Positions 1 to 28,897 of a stretch of 64,000 nt of DNA are shown here, piece by piece. Origin of the DNA: Auanema rhodensis (lineage: Eukaryota > Animalia > Nematoda); contig OZ059899.1 in assembly GCA_964057225.1 (NCBI GenBank), forward strand, positions 9,114,001 through 9,178,000, in the 5' to 3' direction. Within the stretch, counting starts at the first letter, position 1. Every line of letters starts with the position of its first letter. The notes under the pieces were generated by a model that was given only the letters and a program-made list of their open reading frames with translations, had not been told where the DNA came from and searched no databases. The position numbers and the translations under genes are program-made.

Positions 1-532
1 TATTTTACCAAAGACAGTACTGGAGCGTAAGCTGAGAAAATTCGTAATAAAGTTTATTATTAATTTTTCAGATTGGGATGCGTCAATGAAGTTAATAATG
101 AGCTTGTATGCTCAAGCCCAGGATGTTCTCAGCGAAATTGTCCAAAACACGCTCTATGTCATCACAGGTTTCTTAAATTTATAGTACAATTAAGTATATT
201 TTTGTTTCAGACTAGCTGTTTTCATATCATTGGAGAATGAAAATAAAAAAAATGCAATTGTTGAAAACCTGGAACGGAAAAGGAACGAGAGAACAGCAAG
301 AGACGTGCAATCCGAGCAATTGAGACCAGCTGACGGGTCTAAATTCGATCAGAGACGATTTGGTTCGCAATTCTCCAAAACGAACCGTAAAAGAAACTAC
401 TATGACATGGAGTAAGTTTAACACTACTGTCCCGAAATAATTTTTTATTACAGTACGACAGCCGATTCAGATGAAGAGATTTTGATTCCAGGCCCATCAG
501 GACAACAGGATCGCTACTACTCACTTTCATAA
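1..532 (+). CDS. C-terminal exons of MULE transposase (SWIM-like zinc finger and basic tail), 5'-truncated by window edge
   Basis: Same spliced exons as 20444-20975; stop TAA at 530-532. Confidence 0.8.
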
Positions 533-1102
533 AGTGCCGTAGCTACAAAAATTGGATACTAATAAACTTGAATAAGGTGAGTGAACTAACATATTTCAAA
601 CTATATATTTGATTTCATTTACAATATTGATCCATCACACACTCTCACCAAACTGAGAATCATTATTAAAAGGTCAGTTAGAACGATTGCTTAACATCTT
701 TAATGAACACTTTTCATGTATGCAACTGCTCCACAAAAAGAAAACATGCGAAACGGAAAGTTTTATAAAAATTAAATTTCGATTCTTTTCACACTTCATG
801 TTCAACTAATGTAAAAATTTTTTTCCTGATAGTATAATCTCTAATTTGAAAAAAACATAAAATTTCAAACTACAACTTTTGTATTTTAGTATACTTAGTA
901 TAAAGATATTTTTTTGGTAAACTTGGTATACTTGATGAATTTGGTAAACTTGGTAAACCTTGCAAAGTGTTCACAAATTAATATTAGGTATAATTTGGTA
1001 AACCTGGTAAACCTGGTATACCATATAACTATGGTAAACTTGTCTATTGCGTGGTAAACCTAGTTTGGTAAACCTAAAGTTTGGTAAACTTGTCAGTTTG
1101 CC
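1..1102 (+). mobile_element. 3' part of Mutator-like (MULE) DNA transposon, duplicate of 20444-21545
   Basis: Matches 20444-21545 (offset 20,443). Right TIR 923-1102 ends ...TGTCAGTTTGCC, followed by TSD GAAGATTGT (1103-1111) and the 3' half of a tRNA-Arg. Confidence 0.93.
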
Positions 1103-1134
1103 GAAGATTGTAGGTTCGAATCCAGCCGTGGTCG
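1103..1134 (+). pseudogene. 3' half of tRNA-Arg(ACG) (nt 42-73) left by MULE insertion
   Basis: GAAGATTGTAGGTTCGAATCCAGCCGTGGTCG directly after the TIR. Confidence 0.92.
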
Positions 1135-1744: not shown

Positions 1745-1748
1745 TAAA

Positions 1749-9811: not shown

Positions 9812-9884
9812 GGCCGCGTGGCGCAATGGATAACGCGTCTGCCTACGGAGCAGAAGATTGTAGGTTCGAATCCTGCCGTGGTCG
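9812..9884 (+). tRNA. tRNA-Arg(ACG), T63
   Basis: Array copy. Confidence 0.96.
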
Positions 9885-10490: not shown

Positions 10491-10907
10491 CTACTTTAAT
10501 GACTGAAAGACTGAAAATCCATTGGGCTCCGTTTTTGTTTTATCCAATACAAAATCTAAAATTTTTGTAATATTCGTGTTTGGTACAGCCTCATTATTAA
10601 TCACAAGTTGGTTATTCTTGTTTGTGCGCACCTCTGGAAATTTCTCCCACAAATTGTTATACTTTCTTGGCAACTTGTATTCTGGCAATAGAGGTGGATC
10701 AGCATTTTCCACTTGTACTGATATGGGCGCATCTATACTTTCTCTATAGTTTTTGAGACGAGCAATCAAGTCTTCGTATAGTTCAGCCTTTTTATAATCG
10801 GGTATAGCTCTATTTTCTCGTAAAAGCTTCAATTCAGCATCAAACTTGTCTATATTAATTGTTTCCTCGTCGACAGGAATTAGTCGATATTTATGATTGA
10901 GCTTCAT
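10491..10907 (-). pseudogene. Conserved Polinton protein of unknown function, C-terminally truncated at the array junction
   Basis: KYRLIP...KAELYEDLIARL...NQLVINNEAVPNTNI...PNGF resembles the gene typically found downstream of the ATPase in Polintons. The stop is supplied by array sequence. Confidence 0.6.
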
Positions 10908-11212
10908 GATTTAAAACCAAAATAGGCAATACTACATGTAACTATTGTTTTCAATTGTTTGTGTGAAAGCGTTGCCAATAATGATTTAGCCTTTTCCGGT
11001 GTGCGTATCAAAGCTATTTGACGTAATAATGAAGATATGGGCAAGAGGGTTTTATATTCCTTGTTAGTTAAAAGAAAATTATTATTTTTCACAATATTAA
11101 ATACAATTTCAACAATAATTTCAATTTGTGCAAAAGAAAATGAGGAAACAGAACAAGGAGTTTTGGCGCAAGAAGACAAAAAGTTGAAATTTGACAAAAT
11201 ACGACCACTCAT
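10904..11212 (-). CDS. Small conserved Polinton protein (102 aa) downstream of ATPase
   Basis: QIEIIVEIVFNIVK...LTNKEYKTLLP...LRQIA pattern; tight virus-like packing (4 bp overlap with the next ORF). Confidence 0.62.
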   Translation of the reverse strand: MSGRILSNFNFLSSCAKTPCSVSSFSFAQIEIIVEIVFNIVKNNNFLLTNKEYKTLLPISSLLRQIALIRTPEKAKSLLATLSHKQLKTIVTCSIAYFGFKS

Positions 11213-11224
11213 TGAACAAGCACT

Positions 11225-11873
11225 TTAAACACTAAACACATTTCTGGCAACATAAACAATAGGGTTCTCCGCTGTTATATCAGATAGTATACGCTGCTTC
11301 TCACTTGTTAAAGGATGATTGTCAATCAGTAAATGACTATAGGGAGTAGACATTGCATCATCATACGCCTCTAGAGCATTTTTGAAACGTGGCCCAAATA
11401 ATTGCTGCAGACAATTACGTATTTGTAATATATCTGAATGACTTTTCATCAGTATTATATATGTACTATTGATTCGACTGGTCCTGTCCAGTTGAAATGC
11501 CGCTTGCACAAGATTAAACACTGCCAAATTCCAGTGATGAGCCCATACTGAAAAATGTTGTTGAGTAATTCCTTTGCTGCTTTATTCGATAAAAAAAAGT
11601 TCATCAAATCATCCAGCACTAGTATAGTATTTACTCCCTTTTGTTCTTTTATCAAATCAGGATCAGGAGGCCCTTGAATAATTATTAAACGCTCATCATT
11701 TATTGGTACACCTGACGATGACCCACATTGACTGAACCAGAATATTCTATCAATGGGGACGTTGAGAAAAACTTTTCAGTATTTTCACATATGTGCTTTA
11801 TGAGGGTTGTTTTACCGCATTGGGTAGCACCTATTACAGTTGTCTGACTGGGTAGTTTGAAGCTGAAAACCAT
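11225..11873 (-). pseudogene. FtsK/HerA (A32-like) DNA packaging ATPase with two frameshifts
   Basis: Walker A GATQCGKTT, Walker B ILVLDD, HH...LVQ and R-finger SRINSTYIILMK. Frameshifts near 11765 (+2, TTCTC) and 11553 (-1 in a T run) join ORFs 11700-11906, 11455-11655 and 11225-11527. Confidence 0.9.
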
Positions 11874-11952
11874 AATCAACCACTCGTAAATGTACCTAAA
11901 ATGCAAATGATTTCATTTGCAATAGTGTACACGTATCAAGTGGTGGTTTGTC

Positions 11953-12810
11953 ATGGATGATTTTTACATTACTCTTCCATCATCAGTTGACTCTGAAAAA
12001 AGTAATACATCATCAGTGTTTCTTACCAGATTACCTGAAACACTAAGGCTACGCAATAATAGATATTGCATTGGGCTGACAGACATCATTTTTCCTTGTT
12101 CTATATTAAATGTTCAAAAAGATTTATCTTATACACTACGTTTTTCCAATAGAAAATTTATTCTACACTTGCCTAAAGGCAACTATGCAAATGGTGATGA
12201 AATAATACGCGGAATCAATGCTGGAAGAGAATCATTTATCGCCAACAATACAAAGCCTCTTGGAGCTGAGGAAGAAGCACGTATAAAATGTTTAATAGAT
12301 AAAGATGAAGATGTAAAAAAATGGTATAATAATCGCCAGGCTGAGGCTAAGCTAGTGGAGGAAATGCTCGCAGACGCCACATTTCAGTTTAACAAAACAT
12401 TGCAGCGCATAGAGTTTGTAACAAGCAAGCGACTATTAATGAATGCAACGCTTGGTGATGATTTTGCATATTTTCTTGGTTTTGAAAATAAAAACATCAA
12501 CGATACAATAATAGCCAGGCGTCCCAATGATTTTTCAAATAACATTAATACAATGTATATATATTGTGATATTGTAGAATATTCCATTCTTGGTAATGTG
12601 AAAGCTAATTTACTTGCATGTTTGCCTGTACCACCTCCTACTGAATTTGGTAAAATGATTGCCAAAACATTTAATCCTATTCGTTATGTACCAATCACTA
12701 GACAAACACTCGATACCATACGTATTGAAATTTTAGATGAATTTTGTCGTCCTATGCATTTTAATAATGGTTCTACAGTTGTTACATTGCATGTTAAAAA
12801 TATGAAATAA
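11953..12810 (+). CDS. Polinton minor capsid (penton-like, single jelly-roll) protein, 285 aa
   Basis: N-terminal FYITLPSS...F.TRLP..L.L....IGL.DI.FP and C-terminal MYIYCDIVEYSILG...LLA...F.PIRYVP.....IRIEILD.....F..G..VVTLH, typical of Polinton PX/penton. Confidence 0.88.
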   Translation: MDDFYITLPSSVDSEKSNTSSVFLTRLPETLRLRNNRYCIGLTDIIFPCSILNVQKDLSYTLRFSNRKFILHLPKGNYANGDEIIRGINAGRESFIANNTKPLGAEEEARIKCLIDKDEDVKKWYNNRQAEAKLVEEMLADATFQFNKTLQRIEFVTSKRLLMNATLGDDFAYFLGFENKNINDTIIARRPNDFSNNINTMYIYCDIVEYSILGNVKANLLACLPVPPPTEFGKMIAKTFNPIRYVPITRQTLDTIRIEILDEFCRPMHFNNGSTVVTLHVKNMK

Positions 12811-12815
12811 ACGTT

Positions 12816-13280
12816 TTATTCAACAGTTATACAATACCACATTTTTATTTTCGAAGGTTTAAAAGATAGTTTAGGGCAGTTTTGTTTGTCGCTCGGCTCG
12901 TGTTGTGAATGTTCTCCGTCACTATTGCTGCGGCATCTTTTTGATTGGGTTGAATGTACAAACTCCTCAGCTTTTTCAAAGGGTTTGCTGGTATCATTTC
13001 CATCACCATCTTCACCATTCGTTCCATTATTATTATGAATACGCCGAATATGACGCTCACAATTGAATCTTGTTCCAAAAGTTTCACTACAATGAGGGCA
13101 CAAACGTCTACGAACACCATCCAAATGTCCATATTTTTGAATAAAGTCAGCATTGCTGATATAATTGTTACATATGGGTTGAATCCCTGCATGCCTTTTC
13201 AAAACGTGATCACTAAAATGTTTGGTTGAAGAAAATATTTCCTTGCATGTACCACAATATTTGTTACATAAAAGTTCCAT
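12816..13280 (-). CDS. C2H2 zinc-finger protein (Polinton accessory gene)
   Basis: Two fingers CGTC...F...H...H and CPHC...F...H...H; first ATG at 13280. Confidence 0.75.
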   Translation of the reverse strand: MELLCNKYCGTCKEIFSSTKHFSDHVLKRHAGIQPICNNYISNADFIQKYGHLDGVRRRLCPHCSETFGTRFNCERHIRRIHNNNGTNGEDGDGNDTSKPFEKAEEFVHSTQSKRCRSNSDGEHSQHEPSDKQNCPKLSFKPSKIKMWYCITVE

Positions 13281-13321
13281 TAGAGGAAAATGAAAAACGA
13301 CCACACGCAATCAACCCACTT

Positions 13322-13528
13322 TTATATAATGAGCAATAATATGACTAGTGTTGTACAAAAGCCCAATCCCAATGCTATACCTTTAATAAATGGCACTGAA
13401 ATACATTTCAACATTCTCCTGTATAAAGGCGCTGGTTTAGATTGCTCCAACGTGTATTTGACACATAATTCACAGTGACAAGGAATATTCATAACTGACC
13501 ACGTAATGTAGCAGGTTATTAATGACAA
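13322..13528 (-). CDS. Small protein with CxCxxC motif and C-terminal hydrophobic helix
   Basis: ...PCHCELC...GIALGLGFCTTLVILLLII; fills the gap between the protease and zinc-finger genes. Confidence 0.4.
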   Translation of the reverse strand: MSLITCYITWSVMNIPCHCELCVKYTLEQSKPAPLYRRMLKCISVPFIKGIALGLGFCTTLVILLLII

Positions 13529-13533
13529 ATTTC

Positions 13534-13827
13534 TTATATAGTAGCCAATTTATAGTCGAATACTTTATGCATAAACGCTTTAATAAAGACATCATCATTT
13601 TTCAATAGTTTAAAAAATGAACAAATGCTTTCAAATGAATTACCAGCCGACAACATTAGTATTACAAATACCACATAGCCACCACAAGTGTATTCAATTA
13701 TGCGTTGTGGTTTGCAAGTATTAATTTTTACCTTTTTATATTTTGCCAGATAATTTTGAATGTACTTGTTCATTTTATATCCCAAGCTACAGAAAAAATA
13801 GGCTTGCTTGTTACGGACAAAGATGAC
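13534..13827 (-). pseudogene. C-terminal exon of adenain-like (C5) cysteine protease
   Basis: VIFV...AYFFCSLG...PQ...TCGGYVVF...NDD. The catalytic-His region is missing; preceded by a TTGCAG acceptor. Confidence 0.8.
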
Positions 13828-13841
13828 CTGCAATTACTCAC

Positions 13842-14318
13842 CTCATAGCCATGATTGGCAACGGGGTCATAAGCATCGAGTAGATAGCGATGGCCATCTA
13901 CTCTCACTGCAAATTCGCCACCATTAAGCTTATGCATTAATGGGCGGCCCAATCCTTGTTCTAGCCATTTTATATACTTTATGGCTATTATACTCTGCTT
14001 TTGACCGGCATAATAACCAGTCTCGGGCAGAATACCCACTTGGTTCTCTTTAATATGATTCATTTTCAACTGTAATATAATAGTTTTGAAAATGCTTGTA
14101 TTTGAAAAAACTTGCCTGGAATAAAGAGAAACTGGCAAATGTCATACATTGTATGACAGGGTTCCAGCCAGTGGTGGCGGTTGCCAACTTCATGTAAACT
14201 TTCATACAGTTGGTTAAAATACGGACATCTGTCCTACAATATTCCAAAAGCTCTTCATCAAAATCAAACGCTCTTTGATTACGCTCTTCATACCAAATAT
14301 CGAATGAAGCTAGGTCTA
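13842..14318 (-). pseudogene. Internal fragment of protein-primed DNA polymerase B (pPolB), with one GC-AG intron (14070-14115)
   Basis: Exo III region FDFDEELLEYCRTDVRIL, then CMTFAS...Q|LKMNH...GILPETGY, then QSIIAIKYIKWLE...HKLNGGE...YLLDAYD...YE. Confidence 0.88.
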
Positions 14319-14931
14319 CCGACCAGTGCGTTTTATGCGTCGGTGTGACCACTATAATACACACTTTTTATAATGGTTATACGCTTTTAGTTTAAATATA
14401 AAAAATTTTTGTTTATAACTTTTTATAAATTTACTTTTCTTTAAATTATTTTTATTAATGTTTAAAAATAAATGGCATTTGATTTTTAAATATAAAGTTT
14501 TTTTTTTTCAACTTTGAAAAAACTTTTATAAACATTTGTTAATGTTAAAAAATAAATGAAAAGGTCAAGATTGTGTTTTATTATTTTACTAGTTCAAAAT
14601 GTTTGAAATATTTATAATTTGTAAGAATTCAAAATTGGTTGAAAGAAAGATAGATGAGGAAAGATAGATAGATAGTGAGATGAAATGTAAAGATTTTAAA
14701 ATGAATGCTGTTCAAAAGAATGAATATGTAAATTTCAAAATACTTGCAATTTGCTTGATAAAAGATATAGATTGAGATGAAGTGTAAAGATGAGAGAGAG
14801 AGAATTTTATGAATGCAATTGAAAAAGAGAAATAAATTTCAAAATGTTTTCAAAATATGCAACTGGAGCAAGAGAAAATTTCATGTTTCAAAAGATATAT
14901 TATGAAATGATATGTAAATAAAAGATCGCAC

Positions 14932-15344
14932 CTCTATTTTACAGACATCGTTGAAAGCCGCTCCATATCCGACTTGCCCTCCACTGGTTGATGGGGTAGC
15001 GGGATCCCATTCTCTTAAAAAGAAAAAACTAATTGTTATAATTTTTAATATCGCTTACTCATCACTGTCATCCAAGGTTATTACTTCAATAACCCTTGAT
15101 GATGAGGGCCCACTGTTAAAAGTGGGTGATGTGGGCTCACAGAGCTCGATCCCACCAGCCTCGGCAAACTTTATACGTTTACTAAAAAACAAAATATATA
15201 TAAAGATTCAAAATATTGTTAAATTACCTGAGCTGATTAATCTCTTCATAATCAAATCCTAGCTCTTCACATAAACGTTTATAACTGAAAAAAGAAAAAG
15301 TTTACAAACAAATAATCAAAAAGACACAACCTATTAGCAGCCAT
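14932..15344 (-). CDS. Spliced 5' exons of a Polinton gene, probably the pPolB N-terminus
   Basis: Exons 15344-15331, 15284-15228, 15181-15059 and 15013-14932, joined by GT-AG introns of 46, 46 and 45 nt, give an open frame MAANSYKRLCEELG...VIEVITLDDSDEEWD...GGQVGYGAAFNDVCKIE. Confidence 0.65.
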
Positions 15345-15740
15345 TGTACCTTGATATAATGAATATATCAGTCTACACATTGCTGTTGGCATTGTAATTT
15401 GTTATGTAACATGGATTTGGGTACAGCTGTCAAAACTAACAGTTGCCATAAACTTTAAAATAAATAAGCTTATTGAATACATCTGTTTTTATTGTCCCCG
15501 TCGGATTAATTTTTGTTATTAGTTCTTATTAAATTAACTTTATGCGTTTCATTGAGGTCAGCGCAACTGTTTGTTAATCTTATTGTATTTACCTTCAATG
15601 TGTGCTCTATTTAGTTATTGTATTGTTATATTAGTAAAATAAAGTTTAAAACTAATCTTTTATTATAATTTGAAACTTTTACTTGTTAGAATAAATATAA
15701 TTAATAACAATTTGTAATTTCAAAAAGTAATAATTTAATG

Positions 15741-15890
15741 TCGTTCTTATCGAATTAACTTTCGATATGTGTTCCATTAAATTTTGGTATTTTATATCGT
15801 TCTTATCGAATTAACCTTCGATATGTGTTCCATTAAATTTTGTATTTCATATCGTTCTTATCGAATTAACCTTCGATATGTGTTCCATTG
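15741..15890. repeat. ~56 bp tandem repeat (2 full units plus a partial third) with ATCGAA-N6-TTCGAT palindrome
   Basis: TCGTTCTTATCGAATTAAC(T/C)TTCGATATGTGTTCCATT at 15741, 15797 and 15852. Confidence 0.9.
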
Positions 15891-16232
15891 AATTACCCAT
15901 AACAAGTACGGTGAACAAAACGATATACATGCAAAAATTTTACTGTTCTTTAAAATAAAAACAATACAAACACAATACAATAAAAAATAAACAAAATAAG
16001 TAAACAAACATTATTAATAAATTTAATAAATAAATAAAATTTAAAAAACAAATTTACATATTTAAATATTTAAAATTTATAATTTTTATTTTTACTTAAT
16101 ATATTTAAAAATAATTAAAACTATATACATACATTTGAATAAACAAATTTAAAATTTGATTTAAAAAAAAAAAAAATCATGCTTTAAATCATGATTTTTA
16201 AATTTAAAAAAGTAAAATCCATGAACCATGAT

Positions 16233-16384
16233 CCCAAAATATGATTTAACAGCTGACGCTCAAAAATATGTTTTTGACAGCTGACGCGCCCCAAAAGTAT
16301 GTTTTTAGCAGCTGACGCCCCCAAAAGTATGTTTTTGACAGCTGTTTGGGGGCGTGGTTAGTAAATTTTGCACGGCTCTCTACT
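16233..16384. repeat. Polinton terminal region: ~30 bp tandem repeats x4 and ...CTCTCTACT terminus
   Basis: CCAAAAGTATGTTTTTGACAGCTGACGC-like units; inverted ACGCCCCCAAA/TTTGGGGGCGT; end consistent with the Polinton 5'-AG...CT-3' rule. Confidence 0.75.
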
Positions 16385-16587
16385 CACCGCTTGGCGGCCA
16401 GTTGCTAAAAACTAGCAATGAAATTGTTGATGGGGTGCTCAAGGGCGATAATATCAAGCAAACTCTTAAAACAGCCGGTCGGCAGGCTATACGAGATCTT
16501 ACCGATTTGGGCAAGCGGCGACGACGCAAAACCACAAAACCTCATAAGCGTCTGTGCATAACTCGTGAGCGGTCGTATCGTATTTAA
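16385..16587 (+). pseudogene. C-terminal part of small basic Polinton protein upstream of major capsid
   Basis: PLGGQLLKTSNEIVDGVLKGDNIKQTLKTAGRQAIRDL.DLGKRRRRK; no ATG, N-terminus replaced by the element A terminus; stop abuts the capsid ATG. Confidence 0.65.
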
Positions 16588-17295
16588 ATGGCTAAATTGA
16601 TAGATTCAAAATCAGCACAAGCCCTTTTACCCAATATTAATTATAGTGACATACCGGCGTCGGCATTAGGTGTTGAATTCACTCGTACTGTACAAGTTCC
16701 TTTAAAAAATACTTTTCTTCCTCAAGGACCATGGGAATTTGTTATAGCCCAAAATTCCAAATCATTTCTTAATCTGAGAAGGTGTTGGTTAAATGTAAAA
16801 TTCAAAATTGTAACCACAAACGGCGATCCAGTACCAGACAACCTTGTTTTTGCACCATGCCAACAATTTGCAGCCAGTTTGATACACTCGTATCATTTAA
16901 AAATTGGTGATGTTAGCGTGTATGACTCTACCGTAAATCATGCCTACAAAACATATATTGAGAATATTCTAATGTATAGCAACGATGTTAAAGAGAGCAA
17001 ACTTGCCATAACAGGCTATTATGCGGATAGATATATAGATAATGCAGCCAGTCCTGGATTTAGAGCGCGACAAGGGCTTGTTAAAAATGGCATATTGTGT
17101 GAGATGGCTGCTTCCATCAGTATCGACTTATTCAATCAGGAACGACTGTTTGTAAACTATTCAAAAATGGAGCTAACTGCATATCCAAACCGTGATAATT
17201 TCTTAATTGACACACTGGGATGGAATAATGAAAGCAAGGATGCTGCAATGAAGGAGGAGTTTCCAAACCTGAAAATAGATATCAACGATGTGCAC
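16385..17295 (+). mobile_element. Fragment of a second Polinton (element B): structural gene module
   Basis: C-terminal half of a basic core-like gene plus 5' half of the major capsid, starting abruptly at the terminus of element A. Confidence 0.7.
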
Positions 17296-17325
17296 TTGAA
17301 CAAGGCCGCGTGGCGCAATGGATAA
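16588..17325 (+). pseudogene. Polinton major capsid protein (double jelly-roll), N-terminal ~237 aa only
   Basis: PL...GPWEF.I...FLNL...L.V.FKI, HAYKTYIE..L.YS, SIDLFNQERL. The frame runs into the tRNA array at 17296 and stops in the tRNA D-loop. Confidence 0.87.
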
Positions 17326-17353
17326 CGCGTCTGCCTACGGAGCAGAAGATTGT
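17304..17353 (+). pseudogene. 5' half of tRNA-Arg(ACG) (nt 1-50) interrupted by MULE
   Basis: GGCCGCG...AGCAGAAGATTGT followed directly by the TIR. Confidence 0.93.
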
Positions 17354-17533
17354 GGTAAACTGACAAGTTTACCAAACTTTAGGTTTACCAAACTAGGTTT
17401 ACCATGCAATAGACAAGTTTACCATAGTTATATGGTATACCAGGTTTACCAGGTTTACAAAAGCATACCTAATATTAATTTGTGAACACTTTGCAAGGTT
17501 TACCAAGTTTACCAAATTTATCAAGTATACCAA
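17354..17533 (+). repeat. MULE left TIR with internal GTTTACC repeats
   Basis: Reverse complement of 21366-21545 with a few mismatches. Confidence 0.93.
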
Positions 17534-18084
17534 AATAGATTAAAAAGAGTTTTGAGTATTTTGAAGAAGTTTCCAGGTATAACAAACAAATACGATAAAG
17601 ATATGAAAATGTAAGCTTTTTTTGAAATGATTGATGAGTAATTTTAAAAATATAAGTTTTAAAAAGATACAGTAAGAAAAGTCAAAATCTAAATCATCCT
17701 AATCTCAAAATTCTTGTAATCTGAAATAGAATCTATTATCAAAGAACCTTAATTCATATGAAATTTCTAAAATGTTTCAAGTAGACTAATATAGAACAAT
17801 TAAATAAAAATAAATATTAATTTTTGACAAGATTGTCTTATAAGTGTTAAAAATATTGTTCATATTTAAGAAAAATATAACATGAGTTGATTATAACGCG
17901 TGTTGAACCCTCCGGTATACCATATTAATGACACCTACCATCAATTGGATGACAATTGAGCGTCATATATAGTTCATAAAAAAAGCAAAAATTGTGAACA
18001 TCATCTAAAACATGAAAAATAATTTGATTTTATCAAACCAATTTTAAACTTCAAGTTTAACGCAACCTTCTCAATCTTTCAATC

Positions 18085-20975
18085 ATGAATGCTTTTGAAC
18101 TTATTTTCGATAACAGCATTGCTGTTCTTGATTGCATGCCTGATTTATTGGGCATGCATCAGGGTAAAAATTTTTTCAGGATTTCAAAAAGACAATTTAT
18201 TGTCTACAAGGATATCACTCGGGATATCTTTGTTCCATGGAACAGAAAAGGTCAGTTTTATATTTTCAAATTTCTATATATAATTTGTTTCAGGAGGCAA
18301 TGGTCTGCCTGCTATCAATAACAAGACCTCTTCGAGAGGTTGTAAACTGGTTGACGGGCAATACATCCTTTGCTCGAAGGATGAATGCACCGAATACTCT
18401 TACAGAACTATCCGCTGTAAGAAACCAGATATGGATCTTACTAAAGAGGTTTTTTGTTCATTTAAGATATATAATTAATTTTTGTTTTAGATTCATATGA
18501 TTGTACAAGGCAAGGAAAAAATTGTTGAGCCGGTGCTTATCATTTATAACGTGCAGGTAAGTTTTCTTATTTTGCTTTTTGCTCTATGTACTATATTTAG
18601 GAATCTTTGGAAAATTTTGTGCCCGCTAAACAGAGAATCCTGCCCTCTGTCAGCATAGAAGTTAAAAATGTTCTGGAAAACAGAACAACAGCTGCTGCTA
18701 AGGAAGTGCTAAAAAATATGGAAATTAGCTCCAGTCAGGTATGGGTCTCATTTAATTCTGCATATCAGCACAAATTGCTTGCTATTTTTCTACATTTTTT
18801 TATTTTAGCTGACTAGTCTTGCCCGAAGTGTCAGCACCCACATCAAGTCGGGTACTGGCAAAAGATCGCCAAGCGATGTCAATAAACTCGTTGATAGATT
18901 CGCGAATGCGAGTATGAAAGTGGAGCACATGGAACCAATCAAAGTGGAAAGAACAGGTTAAATTAAGTTTTTATCAATTTAATAGTAATGATTTTTAAGA
19001 TCGTGGTATTGCCTTCTGCCAGATTGTCGGATACCCGACGGCTTTCAAGCATTTTTGTGCTTGCTTGCCAACGGTTGAAGATATGAACGACCATCTTCGC
19101 TTTGTGGACAATCTCCAATACATGCCTAAACAGGAGGCAAAGGAAGCATTTGGTGAGTATTTTGTAATTGAGGCATTGAAACTTTTTTAATCTTCCAGTG
19201 CGAATTTTGAATCAAGTGAATGCTTCCGGAGCTCTACCAACAATAGGAAGTATCATAATGATTGATACTACATTTTCAATCAGTAGTGGCGAATATGTCA
19301 CTCTAGCCCTCGGAGTTTCGGATATGTTCACGTAAGTATAGATTATATTAGTTACATCTTTTTTTATAATGTTAATTTAGGTCAAAAAAATCTGGTAAAA
19401 ACGCTGGCATATTGCTTGCATGTATGGTACATAGTACCAAAAACGCTGGCAATCATGAAGCATTCTCGGCATATTTGAACAAGATGCTATCTCAATATGG
19501 AAGGAACAAAAAAGTAGCTGGTTTGTGCCATGATGGTGAAGATGCTTTCAAAGCATACAACACTGTAAGAAATTTTTTTACATAAGGTTTAATTGTTTTT
19601 TATTTTAGGGATCATTTTTAAAAGATGCTGTGCCGCTAAGATGTTCCGTGCACCGAATGGAGAATATAAAAAGCACATTCGGCAAAGACGATGATGCTGA
19701 GAGAAAGGAACATATCCTGCATAAAATATTCGGGAGAAAAAAAGAGGTATACTTGATATTGTTTTTGAACACTATTTTTATGTTTTAAGACTGAATATGG
19801 AACAATCATGAGGAAAGGGGCTTTATCGTCCCTAACTCGTGACGAATATGAGAAGAAAATGCAGGATATTATTATGAATTGTGGAGAGAAAACTCGACAA
19901 TGGTTTGTTTTATCAACATTTTAACTAATGTTTTTTGGATTCAGGCTCATTGCTAATAAAGAAGATTTGTATCAAACAAATAGTTTGATTCAAAAATTAA
20001 GAGCTGGGCAAAGCCAGCAATTTTTTTCCACTAACTTGCTAGAGTCGAGAAACGCTCAGTTAAAAGCAAGAATGCCTCATCCAATTCCTGCTCACCAGGT
20101 TTTAGAAAAAATGCTGCAATTACATGAAGGTAACTAAACTATTCAAAAAAAAGAAAAAATTAATTTCATTATAGAAGAAATAAAAGATCGAATTGGAGCC
20201 ATTCATCAGAAATCGGACAAACTGGCCACTCACTTTCATGTTGAGAACCACGAGTGGTTAGTAATGACACGTATTGAGAAAATGAACAAACTCAAACTTT
20301 TTGGTTTGAATGACTTCATTTTTGAAAATACGTTGTCGAACTATCCCTCATGGATGAGTGAGCCAGTAGGAACTAATAATGCTGACGTGTTTTTCGAAAC
20401 TGTTCAGCGTTTGGAGGTATTTCCTGCTGCAAAAGCGGGTATATATTTTACCAAAGACAGTACTGGAGCGTAAGCTGAGAAAATTCGTAATAAAGTTTAT
20501 TATTAATTTTTCAGATTGGGATGCGTCAATGAAGTTAATAATGAGCTTGTATGCTCAAGCCCAGGATGTTCTCAGCGAAATTGTCCAAAACACGCTCTAT
20601 GTCATCACAGGTTTCTTAAATTTATAGTACAATTAAGTATATTTTTGTTTCAGACTAGCTGTTTTCATATCATTGGAGAATGAAAATAAAAAAAATGCAA
20701 TTGTTGAAAACCTGGAACGGAAAAGGAACGAGAGAACAGCAAGAGACGTGCAATCCGAGCAATTGAGACCAGCTGACGGGTCTAAATTCGATCAGAGACG
20801 ATTTGGTTCGCAATTCTCCAAAACGAACCGTAAAAGAAACTACTATGACATGGAGTAAGTTTAACACTACTGTCCCGAAATAATTTTTTATTACAGTACG
20901 ACAGCCGATTCAGATGAAGAGATTTTGATTCCAGGCCCATCAGGACAACAGGATCGCTACTACTCACTTTCATAA
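18085..20975 (+). CDS. MULE-family DDE transposase, 15 exons
   Basis: Manual splicing of 14 short GT-AG introns gives a continuous frame with IDTTF (D, 19264), HDGE (D, 19532), LRCSVH..N (CxxH, 19642), TNLLESRN..LK (E, 20042) and SWIM-like C..C...CHH.LAV (~20552-20660). AATAAA follows at ~21004. Confidence 0.9.
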
Positions 20976-21365
20976 AGTGCCGTAGCTACAAAAATTGGAT
21001 ACTAATAAACTTGAATAAGGTGAGTGAACTAACATATTTCAAACTATATATTTGATTTCATTTACAATATTGATCCATCACACACTCTCACCAAACTGAG
21101 AATCATTATTAAAAGGTCAGTTAGAACGATTGCTTAACATCTTTAATGAACACTTTTCATGTATGCAACTGCTCCACAAAAAGAAAACATGCGAAACGGA
21201 AAGTTTTATAAAAATTAAATTTCGATTCTTTTCACACTTCATGTTCAACTAATGTAAAAATTTTTTTCCTGATAGTATAATCTCTAATTTGAAAAAAACA
21301 TAAAATTTCAAACTACAACTTTTGTATTTTAGTATACTTAGTATAAAGATATTTTTTTGGTAAAC

Positions 21366-21545
21366 TTGGTATACTTGATGAATTTGGTAAACTTGGTAAA
21401 CCTTGCAAAGTGTTCACAAATTAATATTAGGTATAATTTGGTAAACCTGGTAAACCTGGTATACCATATAACTATGGTAAACTTGTCTATTGCGTGGTAA
21501 ACCTAGTTTGGTAAACCTAAAGTTTGGTAAACTTGTCAGTTTGCC
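21366..21545 (-). repeat. MULE right TIR
   Basis: GGTAAAC-rich, ends TGTCAGTTTGCC. Confidence 0.93.
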
Positions 21546-21577
21546 GAAGATTGTAGGTTCGAATCCAGCCGTGGTCG
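21546..21577 (+). pseudogene. 3' half of tRNA-Arg(ACG) (nt 42-73) after MULE
   Basis: TSD plus T-arm and acceptor strand. Confidence 0.92.
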
Positions 21578-22114
21578 TAAATTTTTTTCATTTCACTTGT
21601 CATTTACAAAAATCGAATTTATCTTCTTCAACGATTATTTTTGCAATGTGTCATAAGAATTTCACAGTTGAACAAAACGTTTTTTAAGAAGTTTTTTTGT
21701 TGTCAACATATATATTTTCCTGGAATTCGAAAGCATTTGGGATGGAATTTAAAAAGAAAAGAACTAGTTTTTCCTACTTTAAAACAAACAATACGAAATA
21801 AAATGAAAAAGATTGTTAGATATCCAATTTAAACATATACATTAACTTCGATAAAGAGCCTATTAGATTGAAATTTTATGTCTTACAGTTCTCCAACAGA
21901 ACAGACTGATCCTGATTTTTCCACGATTACATAAAACTCTGGTTTGATATAAAAAAAAGGAGAGGAATAACGTTTCCAGGATGTCAAGGATATCGAATCT
22001 AGTGATATTGTAGAAAAATTTAATGTCAGCTCCATAGGTTTTCTCCTAATTTCTCTCATCACAATTGTCTTAGTTTTTTTTCTCATAAGAGTTTCTGAAA
22101 TCTTAGTTGAACAA

Positions 22115-22187
22115 GGCCGCGTGGCGCAATGGATAACGCGTCTGCCTACGGAGCAGAAGATTGTAGGTTCGAATCCAGCCGTGGTCG
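22115..22187 (+). tRNA. tRNA-Arg(ACG), A63 variant
   Basis: Array copy. Confidence 0.92.
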
Positions 22188-22723
22188 TAAATTTTTTTCA
22201 TTTCACTTGTCATTCATAAAAATCGAATTTATTTTTTTCAATGATTTTTTTTTGCAATGTGTCATAAGAATTACACAGTTGAACAAAACGTTTTTTAAGA
22301 ATTTTCTTTCTTGTCAACATATATATTTTCCTGGAATTCGAAAGCATTTGGGATGGAAATTAGAAAGAAAAGAACTAGTTTTTCCTACTTTAAAACAAAC
22401 AATAAGAAATAAAATGAAAAAGATTGTTAGATATCCAATTTAAACTTATACATTAACTTCGATAAAGAGCCTATTAGATTGAAATTTTATGTCTTACAGT
22501 TCTCCAACAGAACAGACTGATCCTGATTTCTCTATGATTACATAAAACTCCCGTTTGATATAAAAAAAGGAGAGGAATAACGTTTCCAGGATGTCAAGGA
22601 TATCGAATCTAGTGATATTGTAGAGAAATGTAATGTCAGCTTCATAGCTTTTCTCTTGATTTCTCTCATCACAATTGTCTTAGTTTTTTTCTCATAAGAG
22701 TTTCTGAAATCTCAGTTAAACAA

Positions 22724-22796
22724 GGCCGCGTGGCGCAATGGATAACGCGTCTGCCTACGGAGCAGAAGATTGTAGGTTCGAATCCAGCCGTGGTCG
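22724..22796 (+). tRNA. tRNA-Arg(ACG), A63 variant
   Basis: Array copy. Confidence 0.92.
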
Positions 22797-23741
22797 TAAA
22801 TTTTTTTCATTTCACTTGTCATTTACAAAAATCGAATTTATCTTCTTCAACGATTATTTTTGCAATGTGTCATAAGAATTTCACAGTTGAACAAAACGTT
22901 TTTTAAGAAGTTTTTTTGTTGTCAACATATATATTGTGCTGGAATTCGAAAGCATTTGGGATGGAAATTAGAAAGAAAAGAACTAGTTTTTCCTACTTTA
23001 AAACAAACAATACGAAATAAAATGAAAAAGATTGTTAGATATCCAATTTAAACATATACATTAACTTCGATAAAGAGCCTATTAGATTGAAATTTTATGT
23101 CTTACAGTACTCCAACAGAACAGACTGATCTTGATTTCTCTACAATTACATAAAACTCCCGTTTGATATAAAAAAAGGAGAGGAATAACGTTTCCAAGAT
23201 GTCGAGGATATCGAATCTAGTGATATTGTAAAAAAATGTAATGTCAGCTCCATAGGTTTTCTCCTAATTTCTCTCATCACAATTGTCTTAGTTTTTTTTC
23301 TCATAAGAGTTTCTGAAATCTTAGGTGAACAAGGCCGTATATAATTTCCTGGAATTCGAAAGCATTTGGGATGGAAATTAGAAAGAAAAGAACTAGTTTT
23401 TCCTACTTTAAAACAAACAATAAGAAATAAAATGAAAAAGATTGTTAGATATCCAATTTAAACTTATACATTTACTTCGATAAAGAGCCTATTAGATTGA
23501 AATTTTATGTCTTACAGTTCTCCAACAGAACAGACTGATCCTGATTTCTCTATGATTACATAAAACTCCCGTTTGATATAAAAAAAGGAGAGGAATAACG
23601 TTTCCAGGATGTCAAGGATATCGAATCTAGTGATATTGTAGAGAAATGTAATGTCAGCTTCATAGCTTTTCTCTTGATTTCTCTCATCACAATTGTCTTA
23701 GTTTTTTTCTCATAAGAGTTTCTGAAATCTCAGTTAAACAA

Positions 23742-23814
23742 GGCCGCGTGGCGCAATGGATAACGCGTCTGCCTACGGAGCAGAAGATTGTAGGTTCGAA
23801 TCCAGCCGTGGTCG
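23742..23814 (+). tRNA. tRNA-Arg(ACG), A63 variant
   Basis: Array copy. Confidence 0.92.
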
Positions 23815-24350
23815 TAAATTTTTTTCATTTCACTTGTCATTTACAAAAATCGAATTTATCTTCTTCAACGATTATTTTTGCAATGTGTCATAAGAATTTC
23901 ACAGTTGAACAAAACGTTTTTTAAGAAGTTTTTTTGTTGTCAACATATATATTTTGCTGGAATTCGAAAGCATTTGGGATGGAAATTAGAAAGAAAAGAA
24001 CTAGTTTTTCCTACTTTAAAACAAACAATACGAAATAAAATGAAAAAGATTGTTAGATATCCAATTTAAACATATACATTAACTTCGATAAAGAGCCTAT
24101 TAGATTGAAATTTTATGTCTTACAGTACTCCAACAGAACAGACTGATCTTGATTTCTCTACAATTACATAAAACTCCCGTTTGATATAAAAAAAGGAGAG
24201 GAATAACGTTTCCAAGATGTCGAGGATATCGAATCTAGTGATATTGTAAAAAAATGTAATGTCAGCTCCATAGGTTTTCTCCTAATTTCTCTCATCACAA
24301 TTGTCTTAGTTTTTTTCCTCATAAGAGTTTCTGAAATCTTAGTTGAACAA

Positions 24351-24423
24351 GGCCGCGTGGCGCAATGGATAACGCGTCTGCCTACGGAGCAGAAGATTGT
24401 AGGTTCGAATCCTGCCGTGGTCG
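24351..24423 (+). tRNA. tRNA-Arg(ACG), T63
   Basis: Array copy. Confidence 0.96.
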
Positions 24424-24958
24424 TAAATTTTTTTCATTTCACTTGTCATTCATAAAAATCGAATTTAACTTTTTTAATGAATATTTTCGCAATGTGTCAT
24501 AAGAATTACACAGTTGAACAAAACGTTTTTTAAGAATTTTCTTTGTTGTCAATATATATTTTTTCCTGGAATTCGAAAGCATTTGGGATGGAATTTAGAA
24601 AGAAAAGAACTAGTTTTTCCTACTTTAAAACAAACAATAAGAAATAAAATGAAAAAGATTGTTAGATATCCAATTTAAACATATACATTTACTTCGATAA
24701 AGAGCCTATTAGATTGAAATTTTATGTCTTACAGTTCTCCAACAGAACAGACTGATCCTGATTTCTCTATGATTACATAAAACTCCCGTTTGATATAAAA
24801 AAAGGAGAGGAATAACGTTTCCAGGATGTCAAGGATATCGAATCTAGTGATATTGTAGAGAAATGTAATGTCAGCTTCATAGCTTTTCTCTTGATTTCTC
24901 TCATCACAATTGTCTTAGTTTTTTTCTCATAAGAGTTTCTGAAATCTCAGTTAAACAA

Positions 24959-25031
24959 GGACGCGTGGCGCAATGGATAACGCGTCTGCCTACGGAGCAG
25001 AAGATTGTAGGTTCGAATCCAGCCGTGGTCG
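24959..25031 (+). tRNA. tRNA-Arg(ACG), A63 plus C3A
   Basis: Duplicate of the 4516 copy. Confidence 0.8.
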
Positions 25032-25568
25032 TAAATTTTTTTCATTTCACTTGTCATTTACAAAAATCGAATTTATCTTCTTCAACGATTATTTTTGCAA
25101 TGTGTCATAAGAATTTCACAGTTGAACAAAACGTTTTTTAAGAAGTTTTTTTGTTGTCAACATATATATTTTGCTGGAATTCGAAAGCATTTGGGATGGA
25201 AATTAGAAAGAAAAGAACTAGTTTTTCCTACTTTAAAACAAACAATACGAAATAAAATGAAAAAGATTGTTAGATATCCAATTTAAACATATACATTAAC
25301 TTCGATAAAGAGCCTATTAGATTGAAATTTTAAGTCTTACAGTTCTCCAACAGAACAGACTGATCCTGATTTTTCTACGATTACATAAAATTCTCGTTTG
25401 ATATAAAAAAAGGAGAGGAATAACGTTTCCAAGATGTCGAGGATATCGAATCTAGTGATATTGTAAAAAAATGTAATGTCAGCTCCATAGGTTTTCTCCT
25501 AATTTCTCTCATCACAATTGTCTTAGTTTTTTTTTCTCATAAGAGTTTCTGAAATCTTAGTTGAACAA

Positions 25569-25641
25569 GGCCGCGTGGCGCAATGGATAACGCGTCCGCC
25601 TACGGAGCAGAAGATTGTAGGTTCGAATCCTGCCGTGGTCG
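25569..25641 (+). tRNA. tRNA-Arg(ACG), T63 plus T29C
   Basis: Duplicate of the 5126 copy. Confidence 0.82.
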
Positions 25642-26586
25642 TAAATTTTTTTCATTTCACTTGTCATTCATAAAAATCGAATTTAACTTTTTTAATGAAT
25701 ATTTTCGCAATGTGTCATAAGAATTACACAGTTGAACAAAACGTTTTTTAAGAATTTTCTTTGTTGTCAACATATATATTTTCCTGGAATTCGAAAGCAT
25801 TTGGGATGGAATTTAGAAAGAAAAGAACTAGTTTTTCCTACTTTAAAACAAACAATAAGAAATAAAATGAAAAAGATTGTTAGATATCCAATTTAAACAT
25901 ATACATTAACTTCGGTAAAGAGCGTATTAGATTGAAATTTTATGTCTTACAGTACTCCAACAGAACAGACTGATCTTGATTTCTCTACAATTACATAAAA
26001 CTCCCGTTTGATATAAAAAAAGGAGAGGAATAACGTTTCCAGGATGTCAAGGATATCGAATCTAGTGATATTGTAGAGAAATGTAATGTCAGCTCCATAG
26101 GTTTTCTCCTAATTTCTCTCATCACAATTGTCTTAGTTTTTTTTCTCATAAGAGTTTCTGAAATCTTAGGTGAACAAGGCCGTATATAATTTCCTGGAAT
26201 TCGAAAGCATTTGGGATGGAATTAAGAAAGAAAAGAACTAGTTTTTCGTACTTTAAAACAAACAATAAGAAATAAAATGAAAAAGATTGTTAGATATCCA
26301 ATTTAAACATATACATTTACTTCGATAAAGAGCCTATTAGATTGAAATTTTATGTCTTACAGTTCTCCAACAGAACAGACTGATCCTGATTTCTCTATGA
26401 TTACATAAAACTCCCGTTTGATATAAAAAAAGGAGAGGAATAACGTTTCCAGGATGTCAAGGATATCGAATCTAGTGATATTGTAGAGAAATGTAATGTC
26501 AGCTTCATAGCTTTTCTCTTGATTTCTCTCATCACAATTGTCTTAGTTTTTTTCTCATAAGAGTTTCTGAAATCTCAGTTAAACAA

Positions 26587-26659
26587 GGCCGCGTGGCGCA
26601 ATGGATAACGCGTCTGCCTACGGAGCAGAAGATTGTAGGTTCGAATCCAGCCGTGGTCG
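26587..26659 (+). tRNA. tRNA-Arg(ACG), A63 variant
   Basis: Array copy. Confidence 0.92.
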
Positions 26660-27606
26660 TAATTTTTTTTCATTTCACTTGTCATTTACAAAAATCGAAT
26701 TTATCTTCTTCAACGATTATTTTTGCAATGTGTCATAAGAATTTCACAGTTGAACAAAACGTTTTTTAAGAAGTTTTTTTGTTGTCAACATATATATTTT
26801 GCTGGAATTCGAAAGCATTTGGGATGGAAATTAGAAAGAAAAGAACTAGTTTTTCCTACTTTAAAACAAACAATACGAAATAAAATGAAAAAGATTGTTA
26901 GATATCCAATTTAAACATATACATTAACTTCGATAAAGAGCCTATTAGATTGAAATTTTAAGTCTTACAGTTCTCCAACACAACAGACTGATCCTGATTT
27001 TTCTACGATTACATAAAACTCTCGTTTGATATAAAAAAAGGAGAGGAATAACGTTGCCAGGATGTCAAGGATATCGAATCTAGTGATATTATAGAAAAAT
27101 GTAATGTCAGCTCCATAGGTTTTCTCCTAATTTCTCTCATCACAATTGTCTTAGTTTTTTTTCTCATAAGAGTTTCTGAAATCTTAGGTGAACAAGGCCG
27201 TATATAATTTCCTGGAATTCGAAAGCATTTGGGATGGAATTTAGAAAGAAAAGAACTAGTTTTTCCTACTTTAAAACAAACAATAAGAAATAAAATGAAA
27301 AAGATTGCTAGATATCCAATTTAAACTTATACATTTACTTCGATAAAGAGCCTATTAGTTTGAAATTTTATGTCTTACAGTTCTCCAACAGAACAGACTG
27401 ATCCTGATTTTTCTACGATTACATAAAATTCTCGTTTGATATAAAAAAAGGAGAGGAATAACGTTTCCAAGATGTCGAGGATATCGAATCTAGTGATATT
27501 GTAAAAAAATGTAATGTCAGCTCCATAGGTTTTCTCCTAATTTCTCTCATCACAATTGTCTTAGTTTTTTTTTCTCATAAGAGTTTCTGAAATCTTAGTT
27601 GAACAA

Positions 27607-27679
27607 GGCCGCGTGGCGCAATGGATAACGCGTCTGCCTACGGAGCAGAAGATTGTAGGTTCGAATCCTGCCGTGGTCG
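27607..27679 (+). tRNA. tRNA-Arg(ACG), T63
   Basis: Array copy. Confidence 0.96.
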
Positions 27680-28214
27680 TAAATTTTTTTCATTTCACTT
27701 GTCATTCATAAAAATCGAATTTAACTTTTTTAATGAATATTTTCGCAATGTGTCATAAGAATTACACAGTTGAACAAAACGTTTTTTAAGAATTTTCTTT
27801 GTTGTCAACATATATATTTTCCTGGAATTCGAAAGCATTTGGGATGGAATTTAGAAAGAAAAGAACTAGTTTTTCCTACTTTAAAACAAACAATAAGAAA
27901 TAAAATGAAAAAGATTGTTAGATATCCAATTTAAACATATACATTAACTTCGGTAAAGAGCGTATTAGATTGAAATTTTATGTCTTACAGTACTCCAACA
28001 GAACAGACTGATCTTGATTTCTCTACAATTACATAAAACTCCCGTTTGATATAAAAAAAGGAGAGGAATAACGTTTCCAGGATGTCAAGGATATCGAATC
28101 TAGTGATATTGTAGAGAAATGTAATGTCAGCTTCATAGCTTTTCTCTTGATTTCTCTCATCACAATTGTCTTAGTTTTTTTCTCATAAGAGTTTCTGAAA
28201 TCTCAGTTAAACAA

Positions 28215-28287
28215 GGCCGCGTGGCGCAATGGATAACGCGTCTGCCTACGGAGCAGAAGATTGTAGGTTCGAATCCAGCCGTGGTCG
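28215..28287 (+). tRNA. tRNA-Arg(ACG), A63 variant
   Basis: Array copy. Confidence 0.92.
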
Positions 28288-28824
28288 TAAATTTTTTTCA
28301 TTTCACTTGTCATTTACAAAAATCGAATTTATCTTCTTCAACGATTATTTTTGCAATGTGTCATAAGAATTTCACAGTTGAACAAAACTTTTTTTAAGAA
28401 GTTTTTTTGTTGTCAACATATATATTTTGCTGGAATTCGAAAGCATTTGGGATGGAAATTAGAAAGAAAAGAACTAGTTTTTCCTACTTTAAAACAAACA
28501 ATACGAAATAAAATGAAAAAGATTGTTAGATATCCAATTTAAACATATACATTAACTTCGATAAAGAGCCTATTAGATTGAAATTTTAAGTCTTACAGTT
28601 CTCCAACAGAACAGACTGATCCTGATTTTTCTACGATTACATAAAATTCTCGTTTGATATAAAAAAAGGAGAGGAATAACGTTTCCAAGATGTCGAGGAT
28701 ATCGAATCTAGTGATATTGTAAAAAAATGTAATGTCAGCTCCATAGGTTTTCTCCTAATTTCTCTCATCACAATTGTCTTAGTTTTTTTTTCTCATAAGA
28801 GTTTCTGAAATCTTAGTTGAACAA

Positions 28825-28897
28825 GGCCGCGTGGCGCAATGGATAACGCGTCTGCCTACGGAGCAGAAGATTGTAGGTTCGAATCCTGCCGTGGTCG
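28825..28897 (+). tRNA. tRNA-Arg(ACG), T63
   Basis: Array copy. Confidence 0.96.

Follow-up and report, generated by a model that had tools for sequence, protein, structure and literature searches.

An apparently intact and very divergent Mutator-like transposon inserted in a tRNA-Arg(ACG) gene of Auanema rhodensis

The stretch of DNA analysed here (called the window, 64,000 nucleotides of Auanema rhodensis) contains a large tandem array of tRNA genes, at the edge of which stands a tRNA-Arg(ACG) gene split in two by a transposon (Table 1). Of the other tRNA genes that the window contains, all 54 are intact; the 5' half at 17304..17353 is the only 5' half that lacks a 3' partner. The tRNA bodies account for 7.5% of the array, a figure that an earlier note on this DNA had put too high (8-12%), and the tRNA body is a GC-rich island in an array of 30-32% GC. 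Upstream lies a unique block, in which PF03175 is matched at 14050-14364 on the minus strand (27.6 bits). The block ends 8 nt before the split gene, with which the array therefore begins on that side. At this boundary, the read contigs of the array enter at 17296-17297, and others leave the block at 17298.

Part of this arrangement occurs twice. Positions 1-10499 are the same as 20444-30942, over 10,499 bp without a mismatch, and this duplicate consists of the right 1.1 kb of the element and 9.4 kb of array. The offset is 20,443 bp, which would carry a whole second copy of the element, mostly upstream of the window. Given that the second copy lies in a 10.5-kb duplication of 100% identity, there is only one insertion event to consider (n=1), as the earlier note had recognised for the partial copy at 1-1102.

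Table 1 Features of the split tRNA gene, the element and their surroundings (positions in the window)
Feature	Position	Strand	Remarks
Second copy of the right 1,102 bp of the element and of the tRNA 3' part	1..1134	+	Same event, not independent
Unique block with Polinton-type DNA polymerase B fragment	10500..17295	.	No array homology
tRNA-Arg(ACG), 5' part	17304..17353	+	nt 1-50, including the A box; matches the intact array genes exactly
Putative Mutator-like element (MULE)	17354..21545	+	4,192 bp; 180-nt inverted repeats, 9-bp duplication; flanks rejoin into a perfect tRNA
Left terminal inverted repeat	17354..17533	+	Tip GGTAAACTGACAAGTTTACC; about 9 GTTTACC/GTATACC heptamers
Predicted transposase gene	18085..20975	+	15 exons, 14 introns of 42-70 nt, 749 codons; no internal stop
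Right terminal inverted repeat	21366..21545	-	Tip GGCAAACTGACAAGTTTACC on the minus strand
tRNA-Arg, 3' part	21546..21577	+	nt 42-73, including the B box; followed by T-run terminator and array spacer

The two parts of the tRNA gene, when rejoined, have the same sequence as 18 intact copies in the array. The A box occupies nt 8-18 and the B box, GGTTCGAATCC, nt 52-62, and the element stands between the two, after nt 50 and 2 nt before G53. It is flanked by perfect copies of GAAGATTGT (17345-17353 and 21546-21554), which is tRNA nt 42-50 and covers the end of the anticodon stem, the variable loop and the first 2 nt of the T stem. The duplication is exactly 9 bp long, because the adjoining outer bases differ. 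Direct reading of junctions and repeats thus agrees with the earlier note on the size of the element and its terminal inverted repeats (TIRs), on the place of the split and on the duplication, which is exact on both sides and has no extension outside. The idea that the tRNA pieces might be parts of the element was rejected, since they are in direct orientation, overlap by 9 nt and rejoin into an array gene. The element has genuinely inserted into a tRNA-Arg gene and has duplicated 9 bp of its target site there. The promoter boxes now stand 4.2 kb apart, and the disrupted copy is therefore presumably inactivated. Neither excision footprints nor further half tRNAs were found elsewhere in the array within the window.

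The left and right inverted repeats differ at 6 of 180 nt, and both have GG tips. In the window there are three instances of the 20-nt repeat tip, where 0.01 would be expected by chance, and no further tips were found. Almost all of the exact GTTTACC/GGTAAAC heptamers of the window (24 of 26) fall within the inverted repeats, and these are probably binding sites for the transposase. It is worth adding that the repeat unit AGGTTTACC and the B box sequence AGGTTCGAATCC, which begins at the base directly after the duplication, have AGGTT in common; this was spotted post hoc and could be chance.

The predicted transposase has a putative catalytic layout of D298, D371, C393xxH396 and E498, with a Cys/His cluster at about residues 628-652. 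By BLASTP, the spliced protein has 35% identity over 599 aa (E 1e-113) to a protein of Auanema sp. JU1783 (P0001, on contig CALQYR020003942.1); the match runs collinearly through the joins between exons, and the C-terminal part and last intron agree with the Auanema annotation. The gene extents of 18085-20975, with 14 short introns, are supported by this comparison, as a gene model. An in-frame TAA at 20856-20858 lies inside the last splice donor, so that an unspliced message would end there, giving 724 aa. Among the read variants listed, the exon differences comprise 9 synonymous and 2 non-synonymous changes, which suggests that the transposase is under constraint; a non-coding part of equal length has 25 read differences. 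The element is apparently intact and functional, to judge from its sequence.

The JU1783 protein is the only sequence relative found. It sits in a TIR-bounded element of its own, which is unnamed and which its record does not describe as a transposon. This element shares several features with the one described here: the catalytic layout and the C-terminal Cys/His cluster are the same, the stop codon within the last splice donor recurs, the gene is also intron-rich, with at least 3 intron positions in common, and there are again long inverted repeats with GGT/GGC tips and short internal repeats. The JU1783 element is shorter (3.3 kb as against 4.2 kb), and its GG-tipped inverted repeats are of 146 nt with subrepeats of the GTACACC type, rather than GTTTACC. 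The Auanema contig (L001) stops exactly at the element tips, and contains neither flanks nor a tRNA.

Elements of the Mutator/MULE superfamily make target-site duplications of 8-11 bp, typically 9, and long terminal inverted repeats are common among them, if not universal. Their transposases have a core related to the MURA/IS256-type DDE transposases (the MULE domain), an N-terminal zinc-finger DNA-binding domain of the WRKY-GCM1 or FLYWCH type and frequently, again not universally, a SWIM zinc finger (CxCxnCxH) after the catalytic domain. The duplication GAAGATTGT has the typical length, and the 180-nt repeats, with their GG tips and internal heptamers, are of the long kind. The MULE core was recognised from the motifs and from neighbour searches with the JU1783 protein, with no HMM match. 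In the ESM Atlas, almost all of the neighbours of this protein are MULE (PF10551) or FAR1 clusters, with feature scores of 0.95 and 179-183 features in common, and some of those with PF10551 also carry PF04434 (SWIM) or PF03101 (FAR1). The predicted structure gives TM-scores, normalised to the match, of 0.76-0.83 over the core (up to 0.83, residues 219-540).

Pfam was searched with the exons and with the JU1783 protein. PF10551 and PF00872 matched neither single transposase exons (E up to 1) nor the JU1783 protein or its core (residues 250-520; E up to 10), ten single exons gave nothing meaningful, and phmmer found nothing in the PDB. At the N-terminus, exons 1-2 of the transposase had no Pfam match, and the JU1783 protein matched only DUF7747, whose score of 24.1 bits falls just short of the cut-off of 25; a Med12 match in the same protein (E 0.027) was weak and was disregarded. 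The AlphaFold single-sequence model of the JU1783 protein has a pLDDT of 32. An alignment of this protein with the separate exons using MAFFT put most of the short exons wrongly, and was not used as a profile. Given that Pfam detects no MULE domain and that the pLDDT is 32, the superfamily call rests on the motifs, the duplication, the repeats and the Atlas neighbours, which support its assignment as a putative Mutator-type (MULE) element of a very divergent nematode lineage. The earlier note had described an intact Mutator-like transposon with a SWIM finger. The former description is borne out, for an intact-looking element, by an uninterrupted 15-exon frame, catalytic residues in the order D-D-CxxH-E, a duplication of 9 bp and long repeats ending in GG. 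As for the latter, there is a SWIM-like Cys/His cluster (C...C-x4-C...C-x-H) in the SWIM place, conserved between the window and Auanema sp. JU1783, but it has no canonical CxC pair, and the Pfam SWIM model does not match it in single exons.

The element resembles MuDR/Mu and the plant MULEs, which make 9-bp duplications and have inverted repeats of about 200 bp and a DDE transposase in which CxxH follows the second D and a zinc-finger-like cluster lies downstream. It differs from them in that the Pfam models MULE, Transposase_mut and SWIM give no match. Insertions of Mu fall near Pol II start sites, and the de novo ones in maize are not enriched at tRNA genes (PMC7337890). Tm1 of root-knot nematodes, which belongs to the Phantom subclass of Mutator, is likewise a nematode MULE that makes target-site duplications of 9 bp and has composite inverted repeats made of short subrepeats; compared by description, it differs in its transposase of 496 aa, with a FLYWCH finger and a recognisable MULE domain, and it inserts without target preference or target consensus (PMC3169594). 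Dada is the only DNA transposon superfamily known for specific insertion inside the tRNA and snRNA genes of multicopy arrays, and its DDE transposase is distantly related to those of MuDR, hAT and P (PMC3706591, PMC8869645). Dada elements make duplications of 6-7 bp and lack terminal inverted repeats, having short sub-terminal ones instead (PMC3706591), as against 9 bp and 180 bp here, and membership of Dada was rejected because duplication length and inverted repeats do not fit. Many independent copies at a single site demonstrate the specificity of Dada, whereas here there is one event.

Several collections were searched for further copies of the family. An exhaustive HMMER search of 1.84 billion representatives with the exon at 19382-19564 returned only the JU1783 protein and an unrelated Tic110 protein. 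A word-based protein search with the JU1783 protein found only that protein itself, and exact-protein look-ups with two reading frames of the window found no record. Protein-guided scans of metagenome and viral contigs gave no match, nor was the repeat-tip pattern found in the viral contigs. Two repeat-tip matches in metagenome contigs were rejected as bare chance matches of 20-21 nt, in DNA of 59% and 48% GC. Read contigs were also searched over the whole element, and among the matches listed there was no flank at the element tips. The metagenome and viral collections and the protein look-ups yielded no further family copy with flanks.

As to why the element lies in a tRNA gene, on balance we favour the simplest account: an autonomous MULE of a very divergent nematode lineage inserted here without targeting, and the insertion was kept through redundancy. 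The DDE transposase, for which the GTTTACC heptamers of the 180-bp inverted repeats are the probable recognition sites, made a 9-bp staggered cut at nt 42-50 of one tRNA-Arg(ACG) copy and joined the element into it; that a tRNA body was struck is most simply put down to an untargeted insertion. The insertion presumably survived because this tRNA-Arg gene belongs to a group of more than 50 near-identical neighbours and can be lost at no cost. From the share of the array taken up by tRNA bodies, it follows that one insertion into a tRNA has p of about 0.075 even within the array, and none of the data here require that the family target tRNA genes. A single event can neither show nor exclude targeting. 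It may be noted, counter to an untargeted insertion, that the tRNA body takes up little of the sequence and that the cut is right beside the B box.

A softer preference, in which the transposase would favour nucleosome-free, transcription-factor-bound or GC-richer DNA without any sequence specificity, seems unlikely. Pol III-bound tRNA genes would then be favoured in an array of about 31% GC, and the family would be enriched there at varying positions. The GC-rich tRNA body in its GC-poor array would suit such a preference, as would the liking of maize Mu for open chromatin near gene 5' ends, but in the one data set testing this, Mu insertions near tRNA and rRNA genes resembled random loci (PMC7337890), and at this locus there is one event, with 54 neighbouring tRNA genes untouched. 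Strict targeting is less probable still. Here, in line with the suggestion of the earlier note, the MULE would recognise either a tRNA by its sequence or TFIIIC on the B box, and would integrate at nt 42-50, with multicopy tRNA genes serving as a safe harbour in the manner of Dada elements. Dada proves that such a habit can evolve in DNA transposons (PMC3706591), and it would fit that the insertion is within the gene with its duplication ending one base before AGGTTCGAATCC, that AGGTT is common to AGGTTTACC and the B box, and that the transposase is intact and seemingly constrained. However, n=1, the second copy being a mismatch-free duplicate, the 54 adjacent identical targets have no further insertion, and no MULE with specificity for RNA genes was found in the literature searched. 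The case was moreover chosen for lying in a tRNA, which weakens the odds further. Since neither maize Mu nor Tm1 has such a preference, the prior for a MULE that aims at tRNA genes is low. It is very improbable that the junctions, or the position of the element in the array, come from repeats mis-joined in assembly. The mismatch-free 10.5-kb duplicate could be an assembly duplication, and related runs yield only short Logan contigs at this locus, but a mis-join would not give a perfect 9-bp duplication with the tRNA parts in register at both TIR tips, and the element is present in 11 public runs from three organisms.

As matters stand, the element adds a MULE lineage to those of rhabditid nematodes, very divergent, rich in introns and apparently active; the Pfam family models miss it, and it has a single other member, unnamed, in the protein collections searched. 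It also offers a clean example of a DNA transposon that presumably knocks out a tRNA gene inside a redundant array. There is a small chance that this is the first Mutator-superfamily lineage with true target specificity for an RNA gene, at nt 42-50, achieved by the transposase alone or via TFIIIC at the B box. Were this true, the lineage would inhabit the tandem tRNA arrays that are unusually abundant in A. rhodensis, as Dada does in fish, and a Dada-like strategy would have arisen independently in an element with classical long inverted repeats. With its TIRs, one transposase gene and a defined 9-bp site, it would then be a tractable system for Pol III-linked integration, with possible use in site-directed gene delivery. 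If further copies share the tRNA position, this would be the second group of DNA transposons known to target small RNA genes; in related strains, read data with multi-copy signals suggest about 3-5 copies of the element per genome.

ARAGORN identifies 54 intact tRNA-Arg(ACG) genes in the window, on the + strand, and no intact tRNA gene between 9884 and 22115. The element lies in this interval, between two halves of a further tRNA-Arg gene which, when joined, give exactly the sequence carried by 18 intact genes of the array. It is flanked on the left and on the right by the 9-nt sequence GAAGATTGT, and because the outer bases differ between the two sides, the duplication is exactly 9 bp. In standard tRNA numbering it spans nt 42-50, taking in the last two pairs of the anticodon stem, all 5 nt of the variable loop and two nucleotides at the start of the T stem; the B box GGTTCGAATCC starts at nt 52. 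An earlier note on this DNA had described such an insertion, and its description is confirmed. The arrangement shows that the element entered an intact tRNA-Arg gene by canonical DDE-type integration, the stagger being 9 bp. On the side of a Polinton block, the split gene is the outermost tRNA of the array. A search for tRNA halves found one orphan 5′ half, two orphan 3′ halves and no others. The split gene is presumably dead, and the insertion probably persisted because its target was redundant.

Coordinates of the split tRNA gene, the transposase gene and neighbouring features in the window
Feature	Position	Strand	Remarks
Third occurrence of 20-nt repeat tip	1083-1102
Unique 6.8-kb block	10500-17295		No array homology
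Polinton-type DNA polymerase B fragment	14050-14364	-	PF03175
tRNA-Arg(ACG), 5′ part	17304-17353		nt 1-50
Transposase gene	18085-20975		15 exons, 749 codons
Region with in-frame stop inside last-intron donor	20855-20896		About 3041-3083 in L001
tRNA-Arg, 3′ part	21546-21577		nt 42-73

The element comprises the 4,192 bp between the tRNA halves, with inverted repeats of 180 nt that differ by 6 mismatches. Three occurrences of the 20-nt repeat tip were counted in the window, where 0.01 would be expected. Each repeat contains about nine GTTTACC/GTATACC heptamers. The 64-kb window has 26 exact GTTTACC/GGTAAAC heptamers, and the inverted repeats account for 24 of them; the heptamers are putative transposase binding sites. 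At 17345-17400 and 21546-21566, the commonest inverted-repeat unit, AGGTTTACC, has its first five bases, AGGTT, in common with the B box AGGTTCGAATCC; the latter starts at the base right after the target-site duplication.

No long open frame is present in the element interior. A search for introns (GT..AG, 38-110 nt) gave a single uninterrupted frame starting at ATG 18085, with introns all of 42-70 nt and nematode-style, TTTCAG-like acceptors. The spliced product is collinear at every exon join with P0001 from Auanema sp. JU1783 (629 aa; 35% identical over 599 aa, E 1e-113), which validates the gene model. The complete model was accepted because, over its C-terminal part and its last intron, it also agrees with the gene called downstream on the contig from Auanema. 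The two genes have at least three intron positions in common. In both elements the last splice donor contains a stop codon, and splicing appends a short acidic tail; spliced and unspliced messages would therefore differ at the C-terminus.

The contig encoding P0001 (L001, 3,319 bp) is exactly one element with repeats of 146 nt, and has the same tips, GGT.. and GGC.., as the window element. It starts and stops (1-3319) precisely at these tips, with no flanks, which is how assemblers behave where a multi-copy repeat ends. In its record the product is an "unnamed protein", and the gene is divided into two calls (216-2670 and 2744-3142).

Pfam gave no match to MULE, Transposase_mut or SWIM, either for single exons (E up to 1) or for P0001 and its core (E up to 10). 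No PDB entry is related to P0001 in sequence, and its single-sequence AlphaFold model (pLDDT 32) provided no usable structure. In the ESM Atlas, the clusters nearest to P0001 by language-model features score 0.95, with 179-183 shared features, and are nearly all PF10551 MULE. By predicted structure, the nearest Atlas models are MULE-domain and FAR1/FRS proteins, with TM-scores (normalised to the hit, P0001 residues 219-540) of up to 0.83. The motifs IIMIDTTF (D298), CHDGED (D371), RCSVH (C393xxH396) and LLESRN (E498) are kept. Given these neighbours, the target-site duplication of 9 bp, the length and GG tips of the repeats and the order D-D-CxxH-E, the element very probably belongs to the MULE superfamily, as had been proposed, and adds a new, highly divergent member to it. 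As for the SWIM finger proposed with it, a Cys/His cluster (C...C-x4-C...C-x-H) resembles one, but is non-canonical and has no Pfam SWIM match. A Dada identity was rejected, since Dada elements make duplications of 6-7 bp and have no terminal inverted repeats (PMC3706591), whereas the duplication here is 9 bp and the inverted repeats are 180 nt. The N-terminus of P0001 (residues 39-131) scores 24.1 bits against Pfam DUF7747, a domain of unknown function whose cut-off, 25, is narrowly missed; DUF7747 may act as the DNA-binding module in the P0001-type transposase lineage.

Eleven public sequencing runs, from three coded organisms, contain about half of the element's 31-mers. Every contig placed from these runs shows fixed differences from the window, which means that the contigs derive from other strains or close species. 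Of 133 differences, the best-supported were listed, and the 36 of these inside the element were placed on the gene model: the first 14 exons (2,175 nt) hold 11, 9 of them synonymous, and the remaining 2,017 nt, including the 76-nt last exon, hold 25. On these best-supported differences, the pattern is that of a transposase under purifying selection. The transposase gene, with its uninterrupted frame, is intact and the inverted repeats match, in agreement with the earlier view of the element as intact. The element interior is present as short unitigs, the main ones at 1-4x the lowest depth, which, as a rough reading of assembler depths, suggests some 3-5 copies per genome. Among the minor variants, one carries 17 differences within 246 nt, and in runs X1-X3 there are internal deletions at 19310-19344 (35 nt) and 19868-19925 (58 nt). 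In run X3, whose depth is zero across 20868-21024, a 4.5-kb contig matches 20186-20793, beyond which follow about 3.9 kb of dissimilar DNA. The family therefore has rearranged copies elsewhere. No flanks of the element tips were found among the run contigs listed, no relative of the element in the metagenome and viral collections (two 20-mer matches to the repeat tip there were attributed to chance), and no match in exact-protein look-ups of the window frames.

Positions 1-10499 and 20444-30942 are identical, with zero mismatches, at an offset of 20,443 bp. This 10,499-bp stretch contains the right part of the element, 11 tRNA genes and spacers, and because it is mismatch-free, the partial element copy at 1-1102 represents the same insertion event, bearing out a caveat already made. 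After the insertion, a duplication would have copied at least the right part of the element and 9.4 kb of array. Either tandem duplication of a unit of 20.4 kb, very recent in that case, or a duplicate in the assembly could account for the repeat. At 10499/10500 array spacer adjoins the Polinton block, which ends 6-8 nt 5′ of the split tRNA; array homology left of this tRNA is limited to 8 nt (17296-17303). At 17298 contigs from related runs depart from the block into different sequence, and contigs of the array join at 17296-17297. The joint is therefore not a transposon end but an illegitimate junction with a 2-3 nt overlap, and since the related contigs continue otherwise past 17298, it truncates a repeated element by illegitimate recombination. 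A C2H2-like frame is also present in the block.

The window thus holds one independent insertion event, in a case selected for striking a tRNA. The array is 7.5% tRNA-body sequence, rather than the 8-12% estimated earlier, so an insertion confined to the array would strike one about once in 13 times. We consider it probable that insertion was untargeted and was kept through target redundancy. That the element softly prefers DNA that is open or bound by Pol III is possible but unlikely, and strict tDNA targeting by a MULE lineage, as the earlier note had suggested, is less likely again. The latter would find some support in the AGGTT common to the repeat unit and the B box, a similarity of a kind that Dada elements show with their targets; here it was noticed after the fact and could be chance. 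tDNA targeting as a general habit of MULEs is opposed by maize Mu, whose de novo insertions near tRNA and rRNA genes resemble those at random loci (PMC7337890), and by the nematode MULE Tm1, which has no target consensus (PMC3169594), and a literature search found no tRNA-specific MULE. An assembly artefact is highly improbable.

Within the array (22115-64000), genes are spaced at 609, 1019, 1430 or 2659 bp, these classes reflecting how many copies of a 410-bp subrepeat, from 1 to 6, the spacer holds. Two tRNA alleles are present: T63, whose T-stem partner is A51, in 31 genes, and A63, which gives an A-A mismatch, in 23. The tRNA split by the element carries A63.
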